Shown piece after piece: positions 2 to 53,402 of a stretch of DNA of 64,000 bases. The notes beneath the pieces were generated by a model. It ran no database searches. It was not told the origin of the DNA and was given only the letters and a program-made list of their open reading frames with translations. Made by a program: the position numbers and the translations under genes. Location: IMG/VR virus record IMGVR_UViG_3300017917_001342, positions 1 through 64,000 of that record, one strand, 5' to 3'. Every line of letters begins with the position of its first letter. Within the stretch, counting starts at the first letter, position 1.

Positions 2-3000
2 AACCAAAGTGTTCAGTTCAACGACAATGGCCTGTTTGGTGGACAAACTAACTTTATCTATGACAAAACTAATATTCGTCTTGGTATTGGTACTACAAAC
101 TTAACTAATAGTCTAATGGTGTTTTCTGCGACACCTGCATGGTTTAACACCACCAATGGCGCAGATCAACAGATCATCATCGGTAACAGCACTTCGACCG
201 GTACTGTAATTGGTTTCAATAGCAGTAGTGGTAGTGGTCTCAACACCAATGGTTACATCAGTGCCATCGGTGCAGCAGCAAGAAACATTTCTATTACCAG
301 AACTGGTACAGGTATTGGCGGTGTTACACTGCCGCAGAACACACTGGAAATTGGTGGTACTACTATCATAGGTGGTACTTATAGCGGTAATACCAACTTT
401 ATCAACCCACCTGCAAACGGGTTGTCTGTACAGGGATCAGTTGGTATTGGTACATTTACACCGATCAGTACACTCGATGTTCGCGGGGGCGGTGCATTTA
501 CCGGTGCAGTTAACATTGGCGGTACTGCTACTGTAAACGCATTAACTAGTAACGGTGCAGTGAGTGGCACTACGGGTACATTTACCAGTGCTCTATATGG
601 CAGTAGCTTCAACACTGCTGGCACTGCTACAGTAGCATCTCTAGTAAGTAACGGCGCAGTTAGTGGTACTAGTGGTACATTTACTGGTGCGCTGTACGGA
701 GCCAGCTTCAACACTGCTGGTACAGCTACAGTGGCATCGTTAGTAAGTAACGGTGCAGTTAGTGGTACTAGTGGTACATTTACTGGTACCCTATATGGCG
801 GTAGTGTTAACAGTGCTGGTGCTGCAATTGTTCAAAGGTTGAATAGCAATACCAACGTTGTTGCAACTAATATTCAATCAACCGGTGCTGCTACAGTTGC
901 TAGCTTAACAAGCAATGGTGCAATTACCGGTACAACTATAACTGGTACCACCGGTACATTTACTTCATTACAAAACAGCGGTACCACTACAACTAACGCA
1001 ATTGTATCAAACGTCTATGGCTTATTTGGTCAAAACGTAACTGTTAACTCAACTAACGCATCAACTAGTTCAACAACTGGTGCGTTGTTGCTTGCTGGTG
1101 GTGCTGGTATTGCAGGTAACCTCAACGTAGGTGGTGCTAATAACCTGTTTACTAACCGAGTTGGTATTGGTACTAGCAGTGTACTTGGTGCTCGTGCTAA
1201 TGTGTTAGCTGTATATGGTAATGCAGATGTATACGGCAATTTAGATCTTGCCAATCCTGCCGGCGGCACTAGTGGTATATACTTTAGTGACGGGTCATAT
1301 CAGACTACGGCTGCTGGTTCATCTACACCATACAGTAACACCAACGTAGCAAGTTACCTAAGTGGGCCTGTTCAAGTTGGCAACCTAACTATCAATAATA
1401 CCACAGCAAGTACCAGTACTCTAACTGGTGCTCTGCTTATGGGCGGCGGTGCAGGTATTCAAGGTGCTGTACATATAGGTGGTTTAATCTATGGTGCAAG
1501 TACATTAAACATAGCAGGTACCGCACAGGTTAACAGTTTAGTAAGCAATGGTGCTGTAAGTGGCACAAGTGGTACATTTACTGGCGCACTATACGGTAGT
1601 AGTTTCAATACTGCTGGTACTGCAACTGTTGCATCGCTAGTAAGCAATGGCGCAATAAGCGGTACTACTATAACTGGGACCGGTGGCACATTTACATCAC
1701 TACAAAATAGTGGTCAAACACTTACTAACTCATTGGTGTCAAACGTATTTGGTCGTTTTGGTCAAAACCTAAGTATTGCATCGACTAACGTTAGTATATC
1801 TACTACAACTGGTGCATTAGTTGTTAGTGGCGGTGTTGGTATTGCAGGTAACGTTTGGACTGGCGGCAACGTTGTTCTAGGTGGCGGTGCAGCAATTAAC
1901 CAGTTCTGGGGTAATAACTTAGACACGGCAGCACAACCTAGTTATTCTTGGATAAACAATACCAGTACCGGTATGTTTATACCTGCTACTAGTACTATTG
2001 GATTTAGTACAGCTAGCACCGAACGAGTACGTATTGATGCAAACGGTAACGTTGCCATTGGTACAACCACTGCTGGTGCACGACTTGTTGCATCGTATCA
2101 ACCAACTGTTCCAACCGCAGCGGCTGGAATACCTGCTGTACTGAACAGTTTTTTCCAGTTTGTTGCAGCAGATGGTAACTCAAACAGATTGGTATTAGAT
2201 ACAGCAGGCGGCGCAGCAGCATCTATTGTTGGCAGAGTATCAGGTGGAACCGCAGCATCACCATCTGCAACACCTTCTGGTGCAATCTTAATAACTATGA
2301 CAACCAGAGGCTACGGTGCAACTAATTGGCTATCAGGTACGATAGGTGCGATAAGTTTAAATGCCGATGCAACATTTACTGATACATCATCACCGACATA
2401 TATAAACTTTTCAACTACTCCAACTAACGCAGTAGCAGCCACCGAACGTATGCGTATAGATCCTGCCGGATTTGTCGGTATAGGTACTACTATTCCTCTT
2501 AGCACTCTTGATGTAAATGGTGTTATATCGGCAAGAACTGCATTTAGCACAGCAGGTAGTGCTACAGTTGCATCACTGGTAAGCAATGGTGCAGTTAGTG
2601 GTACTAGTGGCACATTCACCGGTGCTCTATACGGCGGTAGTTTCAACACTGCTGGTACTGCAACTGTTAATGCGCTAGTAAGCAACGGCGCTGTTAGTGG
2701 CACAAGTGGTACATTCACTGGCGCACTATATGGTGGCAGTTTCAATACTGCTGGCACTGCAACTGTTGCATCATTAGTAAGTAACGGCGCTGTTAGTGGT
2801 ACCAGTGGCACATTTACTGGTGCATTGTACGGAGCCAGCTTCAACACTGCGGGTACAGCTACAGTGGCATCATTGGTAAGCAATGGCGCTGTTAGCGGTA
2901 CTAGTGGTACATTTACCGGTGCACTATATGGTGGTAGTTTTAATACTGCTGGTACTGCAACTGTTGCATCATTAGTAAGCAATGGTGCAATTAGCGGAAC

Positions 3001-6000
3001 TACAATAATTGCCACTGCAATAACTGCAACAAGTATACAAAATAGCGGTCTTGAAAGATCCGCAAATATTGTCAGCAATACTTGGATTCATGCAACACAA
3101 AACCTAACAGTTGCTAGTAGTAATACCAGTACAAGTACTACAACTGGTGCATTTGTATTAAGTGGCGGTGCGGGTATTGCAGGTGCTGTACATATAGGTG
3201 GTTTGATTTATGGTGCAAGTACATTAAATATTGCTGGCGCTGCACAGGTCAACAGTTTGATCAGTAATGGCGCTGTTAGTGGCACAACTGGCACATTTAC
3301 TGGTGCTCTATATGGTAGCAGTTTCAATACTGCCGGTACTGCTACAGTTGCATCATTAGTAAGTAACGGCGCTGTTAGTGGCACAACTGGTACGTTTACT
3401 GGTGCATTGTACGGAGCCAGCTTCAACACTGCTGGTACTGCAACTGTAAACGCATTGGTAAGCAACGGCGCTGTTAGTGGTACAACTGGTACATTTACTG
3501 GTGCTATATATGGCGGCAGTTTTAACACTGCCGGTGCTGCGGTTGTTCAAAGTCTAAACAGTAATACCAACATTGTTGCAACAAATCTTCAGTCAACTGG
3601 ACAAACTACAGTTGCATCATTAGTAAGCAACGGCGCTGTTAGTGGCACAACTGGCACATTCACTGGTGCTCTATATGGTGGCAGTTTCAACACTGCTGGT
3701 ACTGCTACAGTTGCAAGTCTAGTAAGTAATGGCGCTGTTAGTGGAACGACCGGCACATTTACCGGTGCGCTATACGGAGCCAGCTTCAATACTGCTGGTA
3801 CAGCTACAGTAGCATCATTGGTAAGCAACGGTGCAGTAAGTGGTACTACCGGTACGTTTACTAGTGCATTGTACGGCGCAAGCTTCAATACTGCTGGTAC
3901 TGCTACAGTTGCAAGTCTAGTAAGCAACGGCGCAGTTAGTGGTACGACTGGTACATTCACCAGTGCATTGTACGGTGCCAGCTTTAACACCGCAGGCACT
4001 GCTACTGTAAACGCATTGACTAGCAACGGTGCAATCAGTGGCACTACAATAAACGGCACTGCTGGTACATTTACATCATTACAAAGTAGCGGTACAGAAA
4101 CCGTAAATGCACAGATAAGCAACGTTTATGGCTTGTTCGGACAGAACGTAACAGTTAACTCAACTAATGCAAGTACAAGCACTACAAACGGCGCATTTGT
4201 ACTTGCGGGCGGTGCAGGTATTGCAGGTAACGTCAATGCCGGCGGTACTAGAAACCTATACACTGGTGCAATCGGTGTTGGTACAACAACTGCTGCTGGT
4301 ATGATAGCAGGTGCAGGTGTAACCAATGACGTTTATGTTTGGGGTAACGTAAGAATTGCCAACACTGCTACAACCAGTAGCGGTATAGTATTCGCAGATG
4401 GTACTAGACAGACTACTGCTGCTACAGGTTCTGGTTCGGGTACTAGCTTTGGTGCCGCAGGTACTATACAATTTGCGGGTGCTGCTAACGCATTTACTGG
4501 TGACACTGCAAACCTTTTCTGGGATGATACTAACAATAGATTGGGCCTATTAACTACAAACGCACCGGCAAGCACTTTGGATGTACGCGGCGGAGTAGGT
4601 GTAACAGGCGCTTCTAACTTTGGCGCAACTGTCACAGTTTCAAGCCTTGTAAGCAACGGTGCAATCAGCGGTACTACAATATCCGGTACAGGTGCAACTG
4701 TTACTTCACTACAAAACAGCGGTACAGAAACTGTTAACACCCTAATATCAAACGTCTATGGCTTATTTGGTCAAAACGTAACTGTTAACTCAACTAACGC
4801 ATCAACTAGTTCGACAACTGGTGCATTGTTGCTTGCTGGTGGTGCAGGTATTGCAGGTAACATCAATGTAGGTGGCGCAAATAACCTGTTTACTAACAGA
4901 GTTGGTATTGGTACTAGCACTGTACTAGGCGCTCGTGCAAACGTACTAGCTGTATATGGCACCGCAGAGGTCTATGGTAACGTAGAACTCACTAACCCAG
5001 CTGGTGGCACTAGCGGCATTTACTTTGCCGACGGTACATATCAAACCACTGCGGCAGGTCAAGGTATTGTCAGACAGACATTTACTGCTACCGCAGGACA
5101 AACTACATTTACTGTGTCGTATGTACCAGGCGCTATAGACGTTTACCAAAACGGTAGTAAATTAAACGTAGGCACTGATGTAACTGCAACCAATGGTACA
5201 AGTATAGTATTGGCGATTTCAGCTGACGCAGGCGATACCATTGAAACCGTAACAAACACACTGTTTAACGTTGCTAACGCAATACCGTTAACTGGTGGTA
5301 CAATTAGTGGTCAATTGTCATTGACAGCAGGTACAGAATCTACTACAACAACTACTGGTACCATGGTAGTAACTGGTGGTGTTGGTATAAGTGGTAGACT
5401 TAACGTTGGTGGTACTACAAACACGTTTGCAGGCAAAGTTGGTATAGGTACTACAAACGTAGTGTACGATCTTGATATAGGTACTAACCAAAATGCTGCT
5501 ACAGTTCTTAGAGTTATTAACCAAAACTCTGGACCAAGCGCAGCAGCAGTATTACAATTGGCAGCAGGTTCAACTCCTGGTGGTGTTAACTGGACTTGTT
5601 TACCAACATATAACCAATTAGTTGGTGCTAATGGTGTAACTAGCAACTTCTTTGATTTTGATACACAAGTATGGAGAACTAATGCAGGCGTTGAACGTAT
5701 GCGTCTTGCATCAAACGGCAACGTTGGTATAGGATCAACTAGCCCTGCTGATTTCTTCCAAGTATACGGAGGTAATATATCTGTTGGTGACGTAAACGCT
5801 AACGTTACAGTTATATCACCTAGTTATATCACATTTACAACAGTTGGTAACTTACCTGTTACACCGCCGGCAGGTGATTTACAAGTATTCTCTAAAAACG
5901 TTGGCACTAGAGCAATGCTTAGCCAGCAAGGTCCTAGTGGTATTGACACTTCGATACAGCCGTTGCTCGGTAGAAACCGTGTATATCAATGGGCAGCACC

Positions 6001-6694
6001 TGGTCTCAACACCACAACTGCACCAGTTACATCATTAGGTGCTACTGCATTTACTGCTGTTGGTACTGCAACTGCAAGAGCATTTGCTACTACTAACATA
6101 CTAACTAGAGCTACTCGTGTTGGTTATGTCAGTGTAGCAACTGTAGGCGGCCTTGCATCTCTGAGAGTTGCAACCGCATGGTTAACAACTGGTACTGGTA
6201 CTGGTTTAGGCGGCTTCTTCTTTATATGCCGTTTTGGTGTAAGTGATGCTGCTACAGTTGCTGGCGCTAGAATGTTTGTAGGACTAAGTTCTAACACTGC
6301 TGCTGCAACCAACGTAGATCCTGCTGCACAGCTTAACCAGCTAGGTATTGCACAATTGTCAACTGACGCAACACAATGGTATTTTGTCTACGGCGGATCT
6401 GTTGCACAGACTGCTATAGCATTGGGTACCACATTGGGCGCACCAACTAATACTGCTACACTATGGGACTTGGCATTGTTCTCTTCACCGGGTGCGAACG
6501 GTGTTATAGGTTACACCGTAACCAACGTTGGTACAGGTGTAAGTGTAACTGGTAGTATAACACCTGGTACACCCGGTACACAAACACCAGCTAACACAAC
6601 TGCATTGACATTCCAAATGTGGCGAACTAACAACGCAACTGCACTAGCAGTGGGTATGGACTTTGCAAGTCTATATATTGAAACAGATGATTAA
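2..6694 (+). CDS. Giant Gly/Thr/Ala-rich tail fibre protein, 5'-truncated by window edge
   Basis: Frame is open from nt 2 (NQSVQFNDNGLFGG...), so the true start is upstream of the window; GIGTT, ERMRI..GNVGIG fibre motifs; many 33-aa repeats. Confidence 0.85.
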   Translation, partial: NQSVQFNDNGLFGGQTNFIYDKTNIRLGIGTTNLTNSLMVFSATPAWFNTTNGADQQIIIGNSTSTGTVIGFNSSSGSGLNTNGYISAIGAAARNISITRTGTGIGGVTLPQNTLEIGGTTIIGGTYSGNTNFINPPANGLSVQGSVGIGTFTPISTLDVRGGGAFTGAVNIGGTATVNALTSNGAVSGTTGTFTSALYGSSFNTAGTATVASLVSNGAVSGTSGTFTGALYGASFNTAGTATVASLVSNGAVSGTSGTFTGTLYGGSVNSAGAAIVQRLNSNTNVVATNIQSTGAATVASLTSNGAITGTTITGTTGTFTSLQNSGTTTTNAIVSNVYGLFGQNVTVNSTNASTSSTTGALLLAGGAGIAGNLNVGGANNLFTNRVGIGTSSVLGARANVLAVYGNADVYGNLDLANPAGGTSGIYFSDGSYQTTAAGSSTPYSNTNVASYLSGPVQVGNLTINNTTASTSTLTGALLMGGGAGIQGAVHIGGLIYGASTLNIAGTAQVNSLVSNGAVSGTSGTFTGALYGSSFNTAGTATVASLVSNGAISGTTITGTGGTFTSLQNSGQTLTNSLVSNVFGRFGQNLSIASTNVSISTTTGALVVSGGVGIAGNVWTGGNVVLGGGAAINQFWGNNLDTAAQPSYSWINNTSTGMFIPATSTIGFSTASTERVRIDANGNVAIGTTTAGARLVASYQPTVPTAAAGIPAVLNSFFQFVAADGNSNRLVLDTAGGAAASIVGRVSGGTAASPSATPSGAILITMTTRGYGATNWLSGTIGAISLNADATFTDTSSPTYINFSTTPTNAVAATERMRIDPAGFVGIGTTIPLSTLDVNGVISARTAFSTAGSATVASLVSNGAVSGTSGTFTGALYGGSFNTAGTATVNALVSNGAVSGTSGTFTGALYGGSFNTAGTATVASLVSNGAVSGTSGTFTGALYGASFNTAGTATVASLVSNGAVSGTSGTFTGALYGGSFNTAGTATVASLVSNGAISGTTIIATAITATSIQNSGLERSANIVSNTWIHATQNLTVASSNTSTSTTTGAFVLSGGAGIAGAVHIGGLIYGASTLNIAGAAQVNSLISNGAVSGTTGTFTGALYGSSFNTAGTATVASLVSNGAVSGTTGTFTGALYGASFNTAGTATVNALVSNGAVSGTTGTFTGAIYGGSFNTAGAAVVQSLNSNTNIVATNLQSTGQTTVASLVSNGAVSGTTGTFTGALYGGSFNTAGTATVASLVSNGAVSGTTGTFTGALYGASFNTAGTATVASLVSNGAVSGTTGTFTSALYGASFNTAGTATVASLVSNGAVSGTTGTFTSALYGASFNTAGTATVNALTSNGAISGTTINGTAGTFTSLQSSGTETVNAQISNVYGLFGQNVTVNSTNASTSTTNGAFVLAGGAGIAGNVNAGGTRNLYTGAIGVGTTTAAGMIAGAGVTNDVYVWGNVRIANTATTSSGIVFADGTRQTTAATGSGSGTSFGAAGTIQFAGAANAFTGDTANLFWDDTNNRLGLLTTNAPASTLDVRGGVGVTGASNFGATVTVSSLVSNGAISGTTISGTGATVTSLQNSGTETVNTLISNVYGLFGQNVTVNSTNASTSSTTGALLLAGGAGIAGNINVGGANNLFTNRVGIGTSTVLGARANVLAVYGTAEVYGNVELTNPAGGTSGIYFADGTYQTTAAGQGIVRQTFTATAGQTTFTVSYVPGAIDVYQNGSKLNVGTDVTATNGTSIVLAISADAGDTIETVTNTLFNVANAIPLTGGTISGQLSLTAGTESTTTTTGTMVVTGGVGISGRLNVGGTTNTFAGKVGIGTTNVVYDLDIGTNQNAATVLRVINQNSGPSAAAVLQLAAGSTPGGVNWTCLPTYNQLVGANGVTSNFFDFDTQVWRTNAGVERMRLASNGNVGIGSTSPADFFQVYGGNISVGDVNANVTVISPSYITFTTVGNLPVTPPAGDLQVFSKNVGTRAMLSQQGPSGIDTSIQPLLGRNRVYQWAAPGLNTTTAPVTSLGATAFTAVGTATARAFATTNILTRATRVGYVSVATVGGLASLRVATAWLTTGTGTGLGGFFFICRFGVSDAATVAGARMFVGLSSNTAAATNVDPAAQLNQLGIAQLSTDATQWYFVYGGSVAQTAIALGTTLGAPTNTATLWDLALFSSPGANGVIGYTVTNVGTGVSVTGSITPGTPGTQTPANTTALTFQMWRTNNATALAVGMDFASLYIETDD
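500..4060 (+). repeat. 99-bp (33-aa) coding repeats FNTAGTATVASLVSNGAVSGT(S/T)GTFTGALYG(A/G/S)S in several tandem blocks
   Basis: e.g. TTCAACACTGCTGG at 608 and 707 (99 nt apart); copies differ mainly at synonymous sites. Confidence 0.9.
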
Positions 6695-49936: not shown

Positions 49937-50419
49937 TTATGCAGCAATTGCACGTAGACTTTTGAGTCTATCAGCAGCATAGCTTGCAGCAAATGCTCGC
50001 GGCTTGACGAATGGGATTACGTTACAAGTACCACGAATGTAACCTATGGCCTGTTGAACAACACAGCTTGAACCATGCTTTTCATTTGGGTTAATGTCTA
50101 GGTGTACATCAATTACATGATCTGACAACAGTTCACTTAGCTTGAGGTAAAGTTCACTGACACGATAGACTTCATTCATCAATCGCATTTGAGGCTTGTC
50201 TTTTCTTTGATCGTAATCGATCTCGCGGTTTACGCTACCAAAGATCCTACAACCCTTATTGCCGTTAATGTGAACAACTACAGCAAGTGTGTAGTCCGCA
50301 TGCCAACGTCCGTCAACTCTTACACGTTCGCTATCGCAACCGATGTATAGTTTTGTTTCTGGTCCGCAGCTATCTACGAATTCTTTGATGTCGTTGAGGT
50401 TTATTTCACTTGGTAACAT
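49937..50419 (-). CDS. RNase H-like YkuK-family protein
   Basis: YIGCDS, RLM.EV, HLDINP, AASYAAD. Confidence 0.8.
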   Translation of the reverse strand: MLPSEINLNDIKEFVDSCGPETKLYIGCDSERVRVDGRWHADYTLAVVVHINGNKGCRIFGSVNREIDYDQRKDKPQMRLMNEVYRVSELYLKLSELLSDHVIDVHLDINPNEKHGSSCVVQQAIGYIRGTCNVIPFVKPRAFAASYAADRLKSLRAIAA

Positions 50420-50822: not shown

Positions 50823-50912
50823 TGGCGGAGGGTGTGGGATTCGAACCCACGAGGGGCTTTCACCCCTGACGGTTTAGTAGACCGCTGTTTTCGACCGCTC
50901 AACCAACCCTCC
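50823..50912 (-). tRNA. tRNA-Ser, anticodon ACT
   Basis: GGAGGGT/ACCCTCC acceptor, GCGGT-CTACTAA-ACCGT anticodon arm, long variable arm, GTTCGAATC, G73, encoded CCA. Confidence 0.9.
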
Positions 50913-50921
50913 ATACTGTTA

Positions 50922-50950
50922 CTTATAGCAATAATTCACAGTGCTGTCAA
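50922..50950 (-). promoter_or_regulatory. Promoter for tRNA-Ser
   Basis: TTGACA-17-TATAAG with TG extension. Confidence 0.65.
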
Positions 50951-50953
50951 CTA

Positions 50954-51691
50954 TTAATCGTTCATCCAACTTGATACAACTAAATCAATTGCCGCAGCCT
51001 GTTCACTAGCCTTGCCCAAGAACACATGATCGAAATAGTCTTCGTTGATGTATTCGCTAGACTCTAAGTTATTGAGAATCTTCAGTGCTTTGCAATCAAA
51101 CAATAGACTATTCACATCAATAACTAGTCCACTAGTACCAACTACCACAATGCAGTCCTGTGGACGCAGTGCAGAAATAGTGTGATACATTACGCTGTAC
51201 AATGGTGCAGCTTCGTGAAAGAACACAATCTTAGGCCTGGTACCTTTGATGCTTTGACACTTACCATCTCTACCAGGACAACGATCAGTTTCACCTACTG
51301 CATCATAGCCAACTGACCATACATGACCGCAGGCATCGCAACGCATCTTAGTGAGTTCACCGTGTAGATGATGTACAGTTTTACAACCAGCACGTTCCAG
51401 TAGATCATCAACATTCTGTGTGAGAATCACTGTGTTGTAACTCTGTTCCCATTTAGCAATTTGTGTGTGCATTGCATTGGGTTTAACTGACGCAAGACCC
51501 TGCCTACGTGCATTATAAAATGTACGTACAAGATCCCAGTTCTTTTTCCAAGTGCGACCGTCTGCTACCTGTGTAACATCATAGCCTTCCCAGAGTCCAG
51601 TTGAACCACGAAAGGTAGCAATGCCACTGTCAGCACTGAGACCTGCTCCGCTTAGCACAACCAATGATGGTTTTCTGGGATCTGTTGTCAT
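50954..51691 (-). CDS. cobB: Sir2/CobB NAD-dependent deacylase
   Basis: GAGLSADSGIATFRG, TQNVD, HLHG, zinc-binding cysteines, VGTSG. Confidence 0.92.
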   Translation of the reverse strand: MTTDPRKPSLVVLSGAGLSADSGIATFRGSTGLWEGYDVTQVADGRTWKKNWDLVRTFYNARRQGLASVKPNAMHTQIAKWEQSYNTVILTQNVDDLLERAGCKTVHHLHGELTKMRCDACGHVWSVGYDAVGETDRCPGRDGKCQSIKGTRPKIVFFHEAAPLYSVMYHTISALRPQDCIVVVGTSGLVIDVNSLLFDCKALKILNNLESSEYINEDYFDHVFLGKASEQAAAIDLVVSSWMND

Positions 51692-51707: not shown

Positions 51708-51784
51708 TGGCGGCCACGGTAGGACTCGAACCCACAACCTTCTCCTTAGGACGGAGCAGCTCTATCCAGTTGAGCTACGTAGCC
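51708..51784 (-). tRNA. tRNA-Arg, anticodon CCT
   Basis: GGCTACG/CGTGGCC acceptor, A20, GCTCC-GTCCTAA-GGAGA, GTTCGAGTC, CCA. Confidence 0.9.
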
Positions 51785-51875
51785 ATTTGTATTTTAATTT
51801 AGCATAGACTGATGTGTACTGTCAAGTACACTGTGCAATTTGCCAATAAATATCACATAATCGTCAAGGTATGCT

Positions 51876-53402
51876 ATGAAAATCAACGAAGTCAAAACCA
51901 CATTAAACACTCTGCGAGCCATTACAGCAGGTAGCAGTGCCAGAGTAGGTATAGAATTTGAATTGGTTATTAATAACGAAACTGGCGATTTTAGCGTATA
52001 TCCAGAACCAGATTATGAAGAAGATCAATATGTTGAATCTTCTAACTGGGAATCAATGTGTGACGACATTACGAATTTCTTTCAAGGCGAATACAACACT
52101 CGCAGTGAAATAAAAAGTGTACTAGACAATGCTAGAGAACCATTTGATGAATGGGTATTACAACAGTGGTTAGACTTAGTTAAAGATGAATTTGATGACT
52201 GGAAAAAAAAGAAATATCCAGATGACGATGATGTAGACGAAGATACATTCTACAACGAAGAATACGATGACTGGTACGACGAAGGCAAACTACTAAAACA
52301 ATACTTAGAAGAAAATGGCCTTGACCAGATGAGCGGCTGGCAAAGTCTCGAATGGCCTTATTACGCAGATCCAGAAATTCCAGTTGATGTTGATCATGTT
52401 GCTGCATCATTTCGTCGTGCTACTGGTATGCGAGCAAGTCTACAAGGTGGTTCAAACGAATACAAAATAGAATCTGACAGCAGTATTAAACCAACCAATA
52501 GCGATGATGCTGGCTTGGAATTTATCAGCCCGCCGCTCAGCATAAACCAAATGATAGACCAACTGCATAAAGTCAAAGCCTGGGCACTAGAAGGCAATGC
52601 CTACACTAATAAAAGCTGTGGGTTGCATATTAACATAAGTGTGCCTGGTTACAACATGGCAGATTTAGATTATATTAAATTAGCATTGTTTTCCGGCGAC
52701 AACTACATACTCGATACATTTGGTCGTACGGCTAATGATTATACTAGCCCTGCAATGGAACTGATAAAACGCAGAATAAAAAACAGTACTGCTAACGTAC
52801 CGCTGGCATTAGATATGCTGGCAGTTAACTTGTTGAAAAAAGCCAGCCAGACTATACACAACGGCTACGTTAACAAATATACCAGTATCAATCCCAAAGA
52901 AGACTATGTGGAATTTCGTGCAGCGGGCGGCGATTGGCTAAACATGGATCTTGACAAGGTGATAGAAACCATGCTGCGTTATGTTGTTGCATTGCAGATA
53001 GCACTTGATCCCAATGCGTATAAACGAGAATATGCAGCAAAACTCTACAAGGTGCTAAGTCCGAACAAACAGGATGATGCTGTTGCGCTGTTTGCTATGT
53101 GGAAAGCTGACAACATAGATTCGGCAGATCTCAAATCACAGTGGGCAAGAAAAATATTGTTTGCCGATCCTGAAAAAACGTTCTCACCAGAAAAAGAACG
53201 ACTAGCTGCAAACATACTCGCTAAAGAAAACCTATGGTTGATACGCGATGGCAGAACTGGTTCAATTCAACGACAGATTCGTGCTGCTACCAAAGCAGAT
53301 GCAGAAAAGAAATACCAGGAATGGTTAGATCTGTTCAGCAATCCTAGCAAGCCATACTATCTACAGAGCATTGCAGATTATCGCCGCACAAAAGTCACTT
53401 AA
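51876..53402 (+). CDS. Putative amidoligase (COOH-NH2 ligase)
   Basis: GIEFEL, DSSI, LEFISPPL, NKSCGLHINIS, KYTSIN, VEFR; AATAAATA at 51845-51852. Confidence 0.82.
   Translation: MKINEVKTTLNTLRAITAGSSARVGIEFELVINNETGDFSVYPEPDYEEDQYVESSNWESMCDDITNFFQGEYNTRSEIKSVLDNAREPFDEWVLQQWLDLVKDEFDDWKKKKYPDDDDVDEDTFYNEEYDDWYDEGKLLKQYLEENGLDQMSGWQSLEWPYYADPEIPVDVDHVAASFRRATGMRASLQGGSNEYKIESDSSIKPTNSDDAGLEFISPPLSINQMIDQLHKVKAWALEGNAYTNKSCGLHINISVPGYNMADLDYIKLALFSGDNYILDTFGRTANDYTSPAMELIKRRIKNSTANVPLALDMLAVNLLKKASQTIHNGYVNKYTSINPKEDYVEFRAAGGDWLNMDLDKVIETMLRYVVALQIALDPNAYKREYAAKLYKVLSPNKQDDAVALFAMWKADNIDSADLKSQWARKILFADPEKTFSPEKERLAANILAKENLWLIRDGRTGSIQRQIRAATKADAEKKYQEWLDLFSNPSKPYYLQSIADYRRTKVT

Follow-up and report, generated by a model that had tools for sequence, protein, structure and literature searches.

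A class II tRNA-Ser gene with the anticodon ACU in a large phage genome: structure, relatives and proposed decoding of AGU codons

The tRNA-Ser(ACU) gene and its neighbours

The window analysed here is the first 64 kb (64,000 nucleotides) of the IMG/VR virus record IMGVR_UViG_3300017917_001342, which is 518,643 bp long, has direct terminal repeats and a GC content of 40.7%. Two tRNA genes, Ser(ACU) and Arg(CCU), were reported by ARAGORN in this 64-kb window, both on the minus strand. The locus contains the following features (coordinates of the window):

49937-50419, minus strand: RNaseH-like ORF (Pfam PF04308, phrog_11311)
50912..50823, minus strand: tRNA-Ser(ACU), class II, 90 nt, with G73 and an encoded CCA (ARAGORN, Rfam, fold, covariation)
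50876..50878, minus strand: anticodon ACU (AGT on the plus strand), with A34 at 50878, C35 at 50877 and U36 at 50876
50927-50922, minus strand: putative −10-like hexamer TATAAG, 5/6 (consensus match only)
50950-50945, minus strand: putative −35-like hexamer TTGACA, 6/6 (consensus match only)
50954..51691, minus strand: Sir2-family ORF, 245 aa (Pfam SIR2, 3.4e-36; phrog_2162, 1e-52)
51784..51708, minus strand: tRNA-Arg(CCU), reading AGG of the same AGN box (ARAGORN; Rfam 54 bits, threshold 29; cloverleaf)
51796..51825, minus strand: promoter-like TTGACA-18-TAAATT, 10/12, with TG, 5′ of tRNA-Arg(CCU) (consensus match only)
51876-53402, plus strand, divergent: Amidoligase_2 protein, 508 aa, beyond the Sir2 and tRNA-Arg(CCU) genes

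The ARAGORN call at 50823-50912 is a tRNA-Ser with the anticodon act, and the sequence matched Rfam RF00005 with 56.6 bits (gathering score 29; E 1.5e-9) over model positions 1-71. The cloverleaf comprises a 7-bp acceptor stem (GGAGGGU/ACCCUCC), a 3-bp D stem, the anticodon stem GCGGU/ACCGU with the loop C32-U33-A34-C35-U36-A37-A38, a 6-bp variable stem capped by a GAAA loop, and the T arm GUGGG-UUCGAAU-CCCAC. Single-sequence folding recovered the acceptor, variable and T arms. The serine identity set consists of a long variable arm, a 3-bp D stem, G73, G1-C72, G2-C71 and A3-U70. The gene has the stem-forming long variable arm, the 3-bp D stem and the G73 of a bacterial class II tRNA-Ser, and G1-C72, G2-C71 and A3-U70 are present as well. 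All BLAST relatives are annotated as tRNA-Ser, with the anticodons ACU, UGA or GCU. The gene is intact, and the initial annotation, which had described a complete class II serine tRNA with a long variable arm, G73, CCA and the loop CT-ACT-AA, was upheld by ARAGORN, Rfam, sequence and fold, the loop being CU-ACU-AA when read on the minus strand. Its coordinate for the wobble base needs correction: 50877 is C35, and A34 corresponds to the plus-strand T at 50878.

Seryl-tRNA synthetase (SerRS) does not read the anticodon, and a class II body with G73 should therefore be charged with serine. A search of the phage for the class II synthetase core domain (PF00587, the SerRS family) found none, so that charging would have to be carried out by the host SerRS.

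A good σ70-like match lies directly upstream of the gene. The two hexamers are separated by a 17-nt spacer, and the −10-like hexamer ends 9 nt 5′ of tRNA-Ser(ACU). The −35-like TTGACA is situated in the gap, of 3 nt and more, past the Sir2 stop codon (TAA, 50956-50954); it is invariant among related strains, and positions 50944 and 50952 vary. The promoter scanner omitted this site because its rule demands a T at the end of the −10 hexamer, where a G is found here. What stands of the earlier claim that the gene has its own promoter is this consensus match, which makes the site a putative promoter from which the tRNA may be expressed.

The Sir2-family gene lies exactly between tRNA-Ser(ACU) and tRNA-Arg(CCU). 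Sirtuin domains of large phages may act with tRNA repair (Iyer et al. 2022, PMC9503650). The location of tRNA-Ser(ACU), apart from the main tRNA array of the genome and beside the Sir2 and Amidoligase_2 genes, could be read as a sign of a non-ribosomal role, in which the Ser-tRNA would serve as a donor for aminoacyl transfer, for example with the amidoligase-like or Sir2 genes. A viral enzyme reportedly performs tRNA-dependent DNA hypermodification, as the title of one paper has it, which would fit a role of this kind. We consider such a role extremely improbable: in its T arm, acceptor stem and loop the molecule has the form of a standard elongator, most other phages hold the ACU tRNA inside ordinary tRNA arrays, and no relatives of the window Sir2 protein that could show a conserved linkage were found in IMG/VR, where a synteny test by way of Sir2 was without yield.

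Conservation and distribution of tRNA-Ser(ACU)

The tRNA-Ser(ACU) gene is also spanned by assembler contigs (X2-X5) that stem from four further metagenome studies, of pond, aquatic, aquaculture and freshwater samples. The DNA flanking the gene differs at about 4% of positions among these strains. None of the best-supported differences listed (426 weaker differences apart) falls at 50876-50878. In the X5 strain, 50902 A>C and 50888 T>G together convert the pair U11-A25 of the D stem to G11-C25. The anticodon is reproducible: four metagenome assemblies, independent of each other and compared as assembler contigs and not as raw reads, keep ACU, and one of them has a compensatory change in the D stem; the anticodon is therefore not an error. 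With the many homologues that also retain ACU, sequencing or assembly error is ruled out as its source.

By BLAST and ARAGORN, Ser(ACU) was identified in the Salmonella phages 7t3, SE_PL, Munch and PHA46, in Klebsiella phage fENko-Kae01, in Erwinia phage Hallingskeid and in Xanthomonas phage XaC1, with full-length BLAST matches of 79-81% identity. It is also present in Rhizobium phage RHph_TM30, where the GenBank annotation already reads tRNA-Ser(act), and the Rhizobium phages TM40 and Y65 gave a match at the same position with an identity equal to that of RHph_TM30. Weaker BLAST matches were to UGA, GCU or CGA serine tRNAs. The cultured-phage genes, mostly annotated as plain tRNA-Ser, share with the window tRNA the class II body, the loop CUACUAA and the encoded CCA, at 71-81% identity to it. 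Those of enterobacterial phages differ from it in having A73 for G73 and another variable stem, and those of XaC1 and the RHph phages in their anticodon stems. A further difference is that ACU is the only AGY tRNA of 7t3 and XaC1, whereas in the window genome it stands alongside GCU. The A73 was seen in the enterobacterial jumbo phages L005, L006 and L007 (positions 301-391). Among the identity elements for serine is G73, and class II tRNAs for leucine and tyrosine typically carry A73.

In IMG/VR, the 17-mer CGGTCTACTAAACCGTC occurs in 25 contigs, and in 23 of them it belongs to Ser(ACU) genes, which mostly lie within tRNA arrays, many on contigs of 110-340 kb. The G34 version of CGGTCTACTAAACCGTC had one IMG/VR match, which is not a tRNA. 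Stem-loop 17-mers of the RHph type and the XaC1 type gave 21 and 0 IMG/VR matches, with no tRNA among them; at the level of exact matches, this shows these two anticodon stems to be absent from IMG/VR. About 20 chance matches per 17-mer are thus possible, given the 21 non-tRNA matches of the RHph-type 17-mer. In two contigs (L021 and L031) a tRNA-Phe(AAA) was predicted beside Ser(ACU), with a poor cloverleaf; it is probably a false positive.

Among prokaryotes, for which representative genomes of 185,579 species were searched, CGGTCTACTAAACCGTC (A34) had six matches, one of which is a tRNA. This is a tRNA-Ser(ACU) in a Tyr-Ser-Ser-Pro cluster of an Acidobacteriota MAG (JBFLVQ010000064.1; L038:4944-5029, minus strand), and the cluster is flanked by cellular genes for an M48 peptidase, a patatin, an aldo-keto reductase and an AraC regulator. 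A strictly phage-only occurrence of Ser(ACU) is ruled out by this gene among cellular genes; possibly it is a cellular example, or else a base error in the MAG.

The same anticodon was thus found in cultured phages and 23 IMG/VR contigs by a census that covers exact 17-mers, BLAST and one gene-anchored sample, as distinct from a full tRNA scan of the collections. A full-text literature search, with subscription journals mostly outside its scope, found no discussion of phage tRNA-Ser(ACU), and the genome papers examined for cultured carriers pass over the anticodon without comment. Phage Ser(ACU) is a rare, recurrent group that stands in public genomes uncommented, and in kind it is a codon-matching phage tRNA.

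Sixteen distinct ACU sequences fit one cloverleaf, with 96.4% of cells paired, against 31-56% in slid controls. Changes on both sides were seen in 19 of 26 base pairs, a figure that none of 500 shuffles reached. Helix 3 is little informative in this test, because the set was partly chosen by an identical anticodon stem-loop. The loop CUACUAA is identical on three anticodon stems (CGGU/ACCG, CAGU/AUUG and CCUGA/UCAGG). The tRNA structure is under selection in many phages.

An anticodon-unbiased phage sample was provided by homologues of the RNaseH-like ORF, which has 150 tblastn-confirmed relatives in IMG/VR. Each of the 80 loci listed falls in a tRNA array, with tRNA genes no more than 4 kb away and usually flanking the ORF on either side, which suggests that the ORF has a tRNA-processing role or is a gene travelling with tRNA arrays. 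The 80 listed loci contain 1,100 tRNAs, and the serine tRNAs among them are 33 GCU, 28 UGA, 2 GGA and 1 ACU (25, 21, 2 and 1 with duplicates removed). At 1 of 64 tRNA-Ser genes, ACU is therefore rare even among phages.

In L108, the closest of the loci listed (86% RNaseH-like protein identity), the genes for Arg(CCU), Thr(AGU) and Ser(GCU) lie directly upstream of the RNaseH-like gene. The syntenic GCU tRNA of L108 is 66% identical to the window tRNA-Ser(ACU), and the GCU tRNA of the window genome itself 77%, compared with 80-88% for ACU genes of unrelated phages. Since ACU genes elsewhere are closer, the window gene is not a recent point mutant of the resident GCU gene; judged by sequence identity, it groups with the ACU genes of other phages. 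A single origin of the ACU tRNAs was considered, and a maximum-likelihood tree of 87 columns resolves neither one origin nor several.

These comparisons make it very unlikely that the gene is decaying or neutral, a serine tRNA that was redundant among the 55 tRNAs of the genome and acquired G34A, or another mutation, by chance. Redundancy does exist, with four other serine tRNAs in the genome, GCU included, and the nearest sampled relative (L108) does have Ser(GCU) at the syntenic site. That GCU gene is, however, the one that is just 66% identical to the window gene, well below other phages' ACU genes. Decay is further contradicted by conservation, with strong compensatory covariation in the ACU group, by the strains that keep tRNA-Ser(ACU) intact at about 4% flanking difference, and by 7t3 and XaC1, which have no AGY tRNA other than ACU.

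The tRNA set, related enzymes and codon usage of the genome

The genome carries 55 tRNA genes and a permuted tmRNA, and 52 of the tRNA genes form a plus-strand array at 119.6-164.8 kb. The serine tRNAs of this main array are Ser(GCU), Ser(CGA), Ser(GGA) and Ser(UGA). The arginine tRNAs of the genome include three tRNA-Arg(UCU) genes and no Arg(ACG). The tRNA-Ser(GCU) gene (123985-124076) is, like tRNA-Ser(ACU), of class II, serves the same box and has the same anticodon stem GCGGU/ACCGU; it differs in being 77% identical overall and in having U32 (loop UUGCUAA).

A second A34 tRNA, Thr(AGU), is encoded at genome 129437-129511 (plus strand). It is well formed, with the loop UU-AGU-AA, lies beside Thr(GGU), Thr(UGU) and Thr(CGU), and has a counterpart in L108 (L108:2645-2718). 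Genome positions 129519-129593 (plus strand) encode a tRNA(CUA) of the amber suppressor type, whose acceptor stem contains two U.U mismatches, and the contig L111 likewise carries tRNA(CUA). An alternative genetic code, which this tRNA brought to mind, was ruled out. The standard code fits the genome: under code 11, ORFs of at least 100 aa cover 85% of it, and freeing any one stop adds 3-4 points. TAG is the rarest stop (29 of 498 ORFs).

The tmRNA is a permuted two-piece molecule (genome 311343-311751, minus strand) with the tag ANDNVAPSYALAA. Three other Ser(ACU)-bearing contigs (L017, L033 and L034) have permuted tmRNAs too, those of L033 and L034 with the tag ANDNRAPAMAIAA. The style of the tag and the permuted form resemble those of Alphaproteobacteria and may hint at the host.

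The region at genome 66322-69663 (L036) encodes a T4 Rnl1-type RNA ligase of 398 aa and contains a kinase-like ORF. Adjoining the ligase, an unusual placement, is a 114-aa deaminase of the CDA fold (genome 67822-68163) with HAE and PCxxC motifs, which ends shortly past the zinc site. Its best PHROG match is phrog_174, phage dCMP deaminases (6.8e-16), and the PDB entries that it matches weakly are dCMP deaminases too. TadA-like proteins were sought with Pfam MafB19-deam, a model that found matches in 12 control genomes; the 114-aa protein scored 17 bits against a cut-off of 27. By this search no TadA-like gene was found in the phage genome, whose sole CDA-fold protein resembles dCMP deaminase.

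Codon usage was counted in 498 ORFs. Serine is most often encoded by AGT (35% of serine codons, 22.4 per 1000), and AGC accounts for 24%, an AGT:AGC ratio of 1.44:1. Among arginine codons AGA is common (12.2 per 1000), and ACT makes up 40% of threonine codons. The initial annotation had tied the tRNA to AGT codons of fibre genes, for which two ORFs are relevant:

116-6694, plus strand: ORF of 2,192 aa
16840-20802, minus strand: 1,320-aa protein with many matches to collagen-like tail-fibre families

At 20.5 per 1000, AGT is average in the collagen-like tail-fibre gene. The 2,192-aa ORF is among the richest (98 AGT codons, 44.7 per 1000), and it is without a PHROG match, no match marking it as a fibre. 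Of the earlier proposal, the abundance of AGT stood and the restriction to fibre genes did not, AGT being frequent genome-wide. Adaptation to AGT is supported and is to be widened from fibre genes to the whole genome. A frequent cognate codon is one mark of a codon-compensating phage tRNA in the model of Bailly-Bechet et al. (2007), and AGT is such a codon here; the other mark is heavier use of the codon in the phage than in its host.

The cultured carriers 7t3 and XaC1 (GC 35.5%) encode 11 and 8 tRNAs, respectively, most of them for A- or U-ending codons, and ACU is the only AGY decoder that they encode. Their AGT:AGC ratios are 5.4:1 and 6.4:1, against 0.6:1 in an E. coli gene sample, and AGT takes up 31-36% of their serine codons. 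Per 1000 codons, AGT reaches 22.1 in the enterobacterial carrier 7t3 and 7.8 in the E. coli sample. The median AGT share of AGY codons is 0.66 at ACU loci and 0.57 at GCU loci (Mann-Whitney p = 0.002), a difference confounded by GC content and shared ancestry. In the window genome the need for ACU is less obvious than in 7t3 and XaC1, because the AGT:AGC ratio is 1.44:1 and a GCU tRNA is present. Nor does demand alone explain an A34 in the AGN box, since nine U-ending codons (GGT, GAT, AAT, ACT, TTT, ATT, GTT, TAT and GCT) are commoner than AGT.

Proposed decoding of AGU by an unmodified A34

The initial annotation had stated that GCU is the usual bacterial decoder of AGY and had called A34 tRNAs rare apart from Arg-ACG. 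Both statements are correct, and the rarity holds especially for split boxes: among high-scoring ANN genes of GtRNAdb other than ACG, 5 of 132 belong to split boxes (Raval et al. 2026). In cells, split-box ANN tRNAs are sporadic and always accompanied by a GNN tRNA (bioRxiv 10.64898/2026.05.15.725136). The near-absence of plain-A34 tRNAs from life has been termed a paradox in a 2026 preprint.

The behaviour of the ACU anticodon has been followed in E. coli. An orthogonal archaeal tRNA with ACU, its loop bases other than the anticodon taken as in tRNA-Arg2 and thus reading CU-ACU-AA, reassigned AGU at 9.4% and AGG at 0.36%, with AGC and AGA below detection (PMC11066159), figures that pertain to an archaeal tRNA body and not to that of the phage tRNA-Ser(ACU). 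The only anticodons on which that study detected inosine, ACG, AUG and AAG, share G36; on ACU none was detected. Ser-tRNA(ACU) on a native backbone raised E. coli growth in several media, and its miscoding risk was judged low (bioRxiv 10.64898/2026.05.15.725136). Engineered Ser-tRNA(ACU) is thus functional in E. coli, tolerated or beneficial, AGU-specific and without inosine (Raval et al. 2026; Schmitt et al. 2024). The engineered constructs are laboratory-made on E. coli or archaeal bodies, whereas the phage gene is natural and conserved.

Two other known kinds of A34 tRNA invite comparison. The tRNA-Arg(ACG), converted to ICG by TadA, also has a gene-encoded A34, and its loop CUACGAA is close to CUACUAA; it serves a four-fold box, in which I34 is harmless, and it has the G36 apparently needed by E. 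coli TadA (PMC11066159), in place of which the phage tRNA has U36. In the Thr(AGU) and Leu(AAG) tRNAs of Mollicutes and Lactobacillales, A34, unmodified or variably modified, has been retained over the long term in AT-rich genomes with many U-ending codons (Raval et al. 2026). Those tRNAs belong to four-fold boxes, where misreading is costless, whereas the phage ACU serves a split box shared with arginine.

Were A34 deaminated to inosine, whether by the TadA of the host or by an enzyme of the phage, the tRNA would read AGU, AGC and AGA, acting as a decoder of both AGY codons whose Arg-to-Ser errors are tolerated, or as a means of deliberate recoding. The loop CUACUAA is one base away from the TadA substrate loop CUACGAA, the substrate range of TadA is broader in some bacteria (Raval et al. 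2026), and a CDA-fold deaminase adjoins the phage RNA ligase. The loop U33-A34-C35-G36-A37 of the TadA substrate, as in tRNA-Arg(ACG), is nevertheless not present, position 36 being U, and E. coli made no inosine on ACU in the same loop, its modified anticodons all having G36 (PMC11066159). The phage deaminase is nearest to phage dCMP deaminases and below the TadA-like cut-off. AGA is, moreover, a common arginine codon served by three tRNA-Arg(UCU) genes, and code 11 gives a normal coding density. With U36 and such heavy use of AGA, we hold decoding by I34 to be quite unlikely. The concern, raised in the initial annotation, that I34 would also read AGA probably does not arise, as ACU in E. coli was without inosine and AGA reading was below detection (PMC11066159). 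RNA runs yielded no informative coverage of the tRNA; one contig of 151 nt, identical to the DNA, came from a library that is probably DNA.

The reading that we regard as probable is a functional tRNA-Ser with an unmodified A34, specialised for AGU and matched to the codon usage of the phage. The wobble base would remain a plain adenosine, pair with U in Watson-Crick fashion and so read AGU and essentially nothing else; we draw this from the codon usage, the E. coli data of PMC11066159 and the absence of a TadA-like gene in the search described above. An ordinary tRNA-Ser(GCU) reads AGC by Watson-Crick pairing through its G34 and reaches AGU only through G:U wobble, whereas A34 should read AGU only. 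Charged by the host, Ser-tRNA(ACU) would form a dedicated supply for AGU, the commonest serine codon of the phage, and a fitness benefit would be expected from it.

Alternatively, A34 could be an anti-defence trait that lets a serine tRNA escape a host anticodon nuclease cutting tRNA-Ser(GCU), with AGY codons still read. In the model of van den Berg et al. (2023), a nuclease-evading phage tRNA differs at the cut or recognition site of a tRNase that attacks its host counterpart. It has been proposed that phage tRNAs resist host tRNases through anticodon-loop changes (PMC10264068), and ApeA cuts serine tRNAs among others. In the same direction, the T4 Rnl1-type ligase (tRNA repair) and the nearly full tRNA set suggest pressure on the tRNA pool, and in 7t3 and XaC1 ACU replaces GCU instead of supplementing it. 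Yet an AGU-only reader would leave AGC unread once the host GCU tRNA is destroyed, and the window genome retains its own tRNA-Ser(GCU), whose stem is similar. The tRNase literature examined describes no nuclease directed specifically at tRNA-Ser(GCU), and for mycobacteriophages it presents GCU as the nuclease-untargeted serine tRNA (PMC10264068). As decoding demand also explains the AGT-rich match more simply, escape from a nuclease appears unlikely.

More tentatively, specialisation for AGU may extend beyond this genome: phages may keep a natural, conserved split-box tRNA with an unmodified A34 that reads AGU only and is spreading among unrelated large phages, sometimes beside an arginine tRNA reading AGA or AGG. 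If true, this would offer a natural, ready-made system for asking why unmodified ANN anticodons are otherwise avoided. Several unrelated large phages hold a split-box A34 tRNA of a kind that cells almost never keep, and since cultured carriers have laboratory hosts, A34 selectivity, miscoding cost and benefit are testable on the natural molecule. The codon-compensation view would be refined, because phages may supply anticodons that the host never encodes, beyond rare isoacceptors. For annotation, a phage tRNA-Ser(act) should not be dismissed as an error.

An arginine tRNA of the AGN box lies near Ser(ACU) in several cases: Arg(CCU) in the window, and Arg(UCU) at a distance of 3-7 nt in one IMG/VR phage group (L013, L020 and L032). 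The pairing may be a coincidence, or the partner may guard AGA and AGG against misreading, as an adjacent arginine tRNA reading these codons could out-compete ACU at near-cognate codons; for tRNA-Ser(ACU) and tRNA-Arg(CCU) of the window, a functional link of this kind is speculative. The second A34 tRNA of the genome, Thr(AGU), likewise fits a top codon, since ACT makes up the 40% of threonine codons given above.
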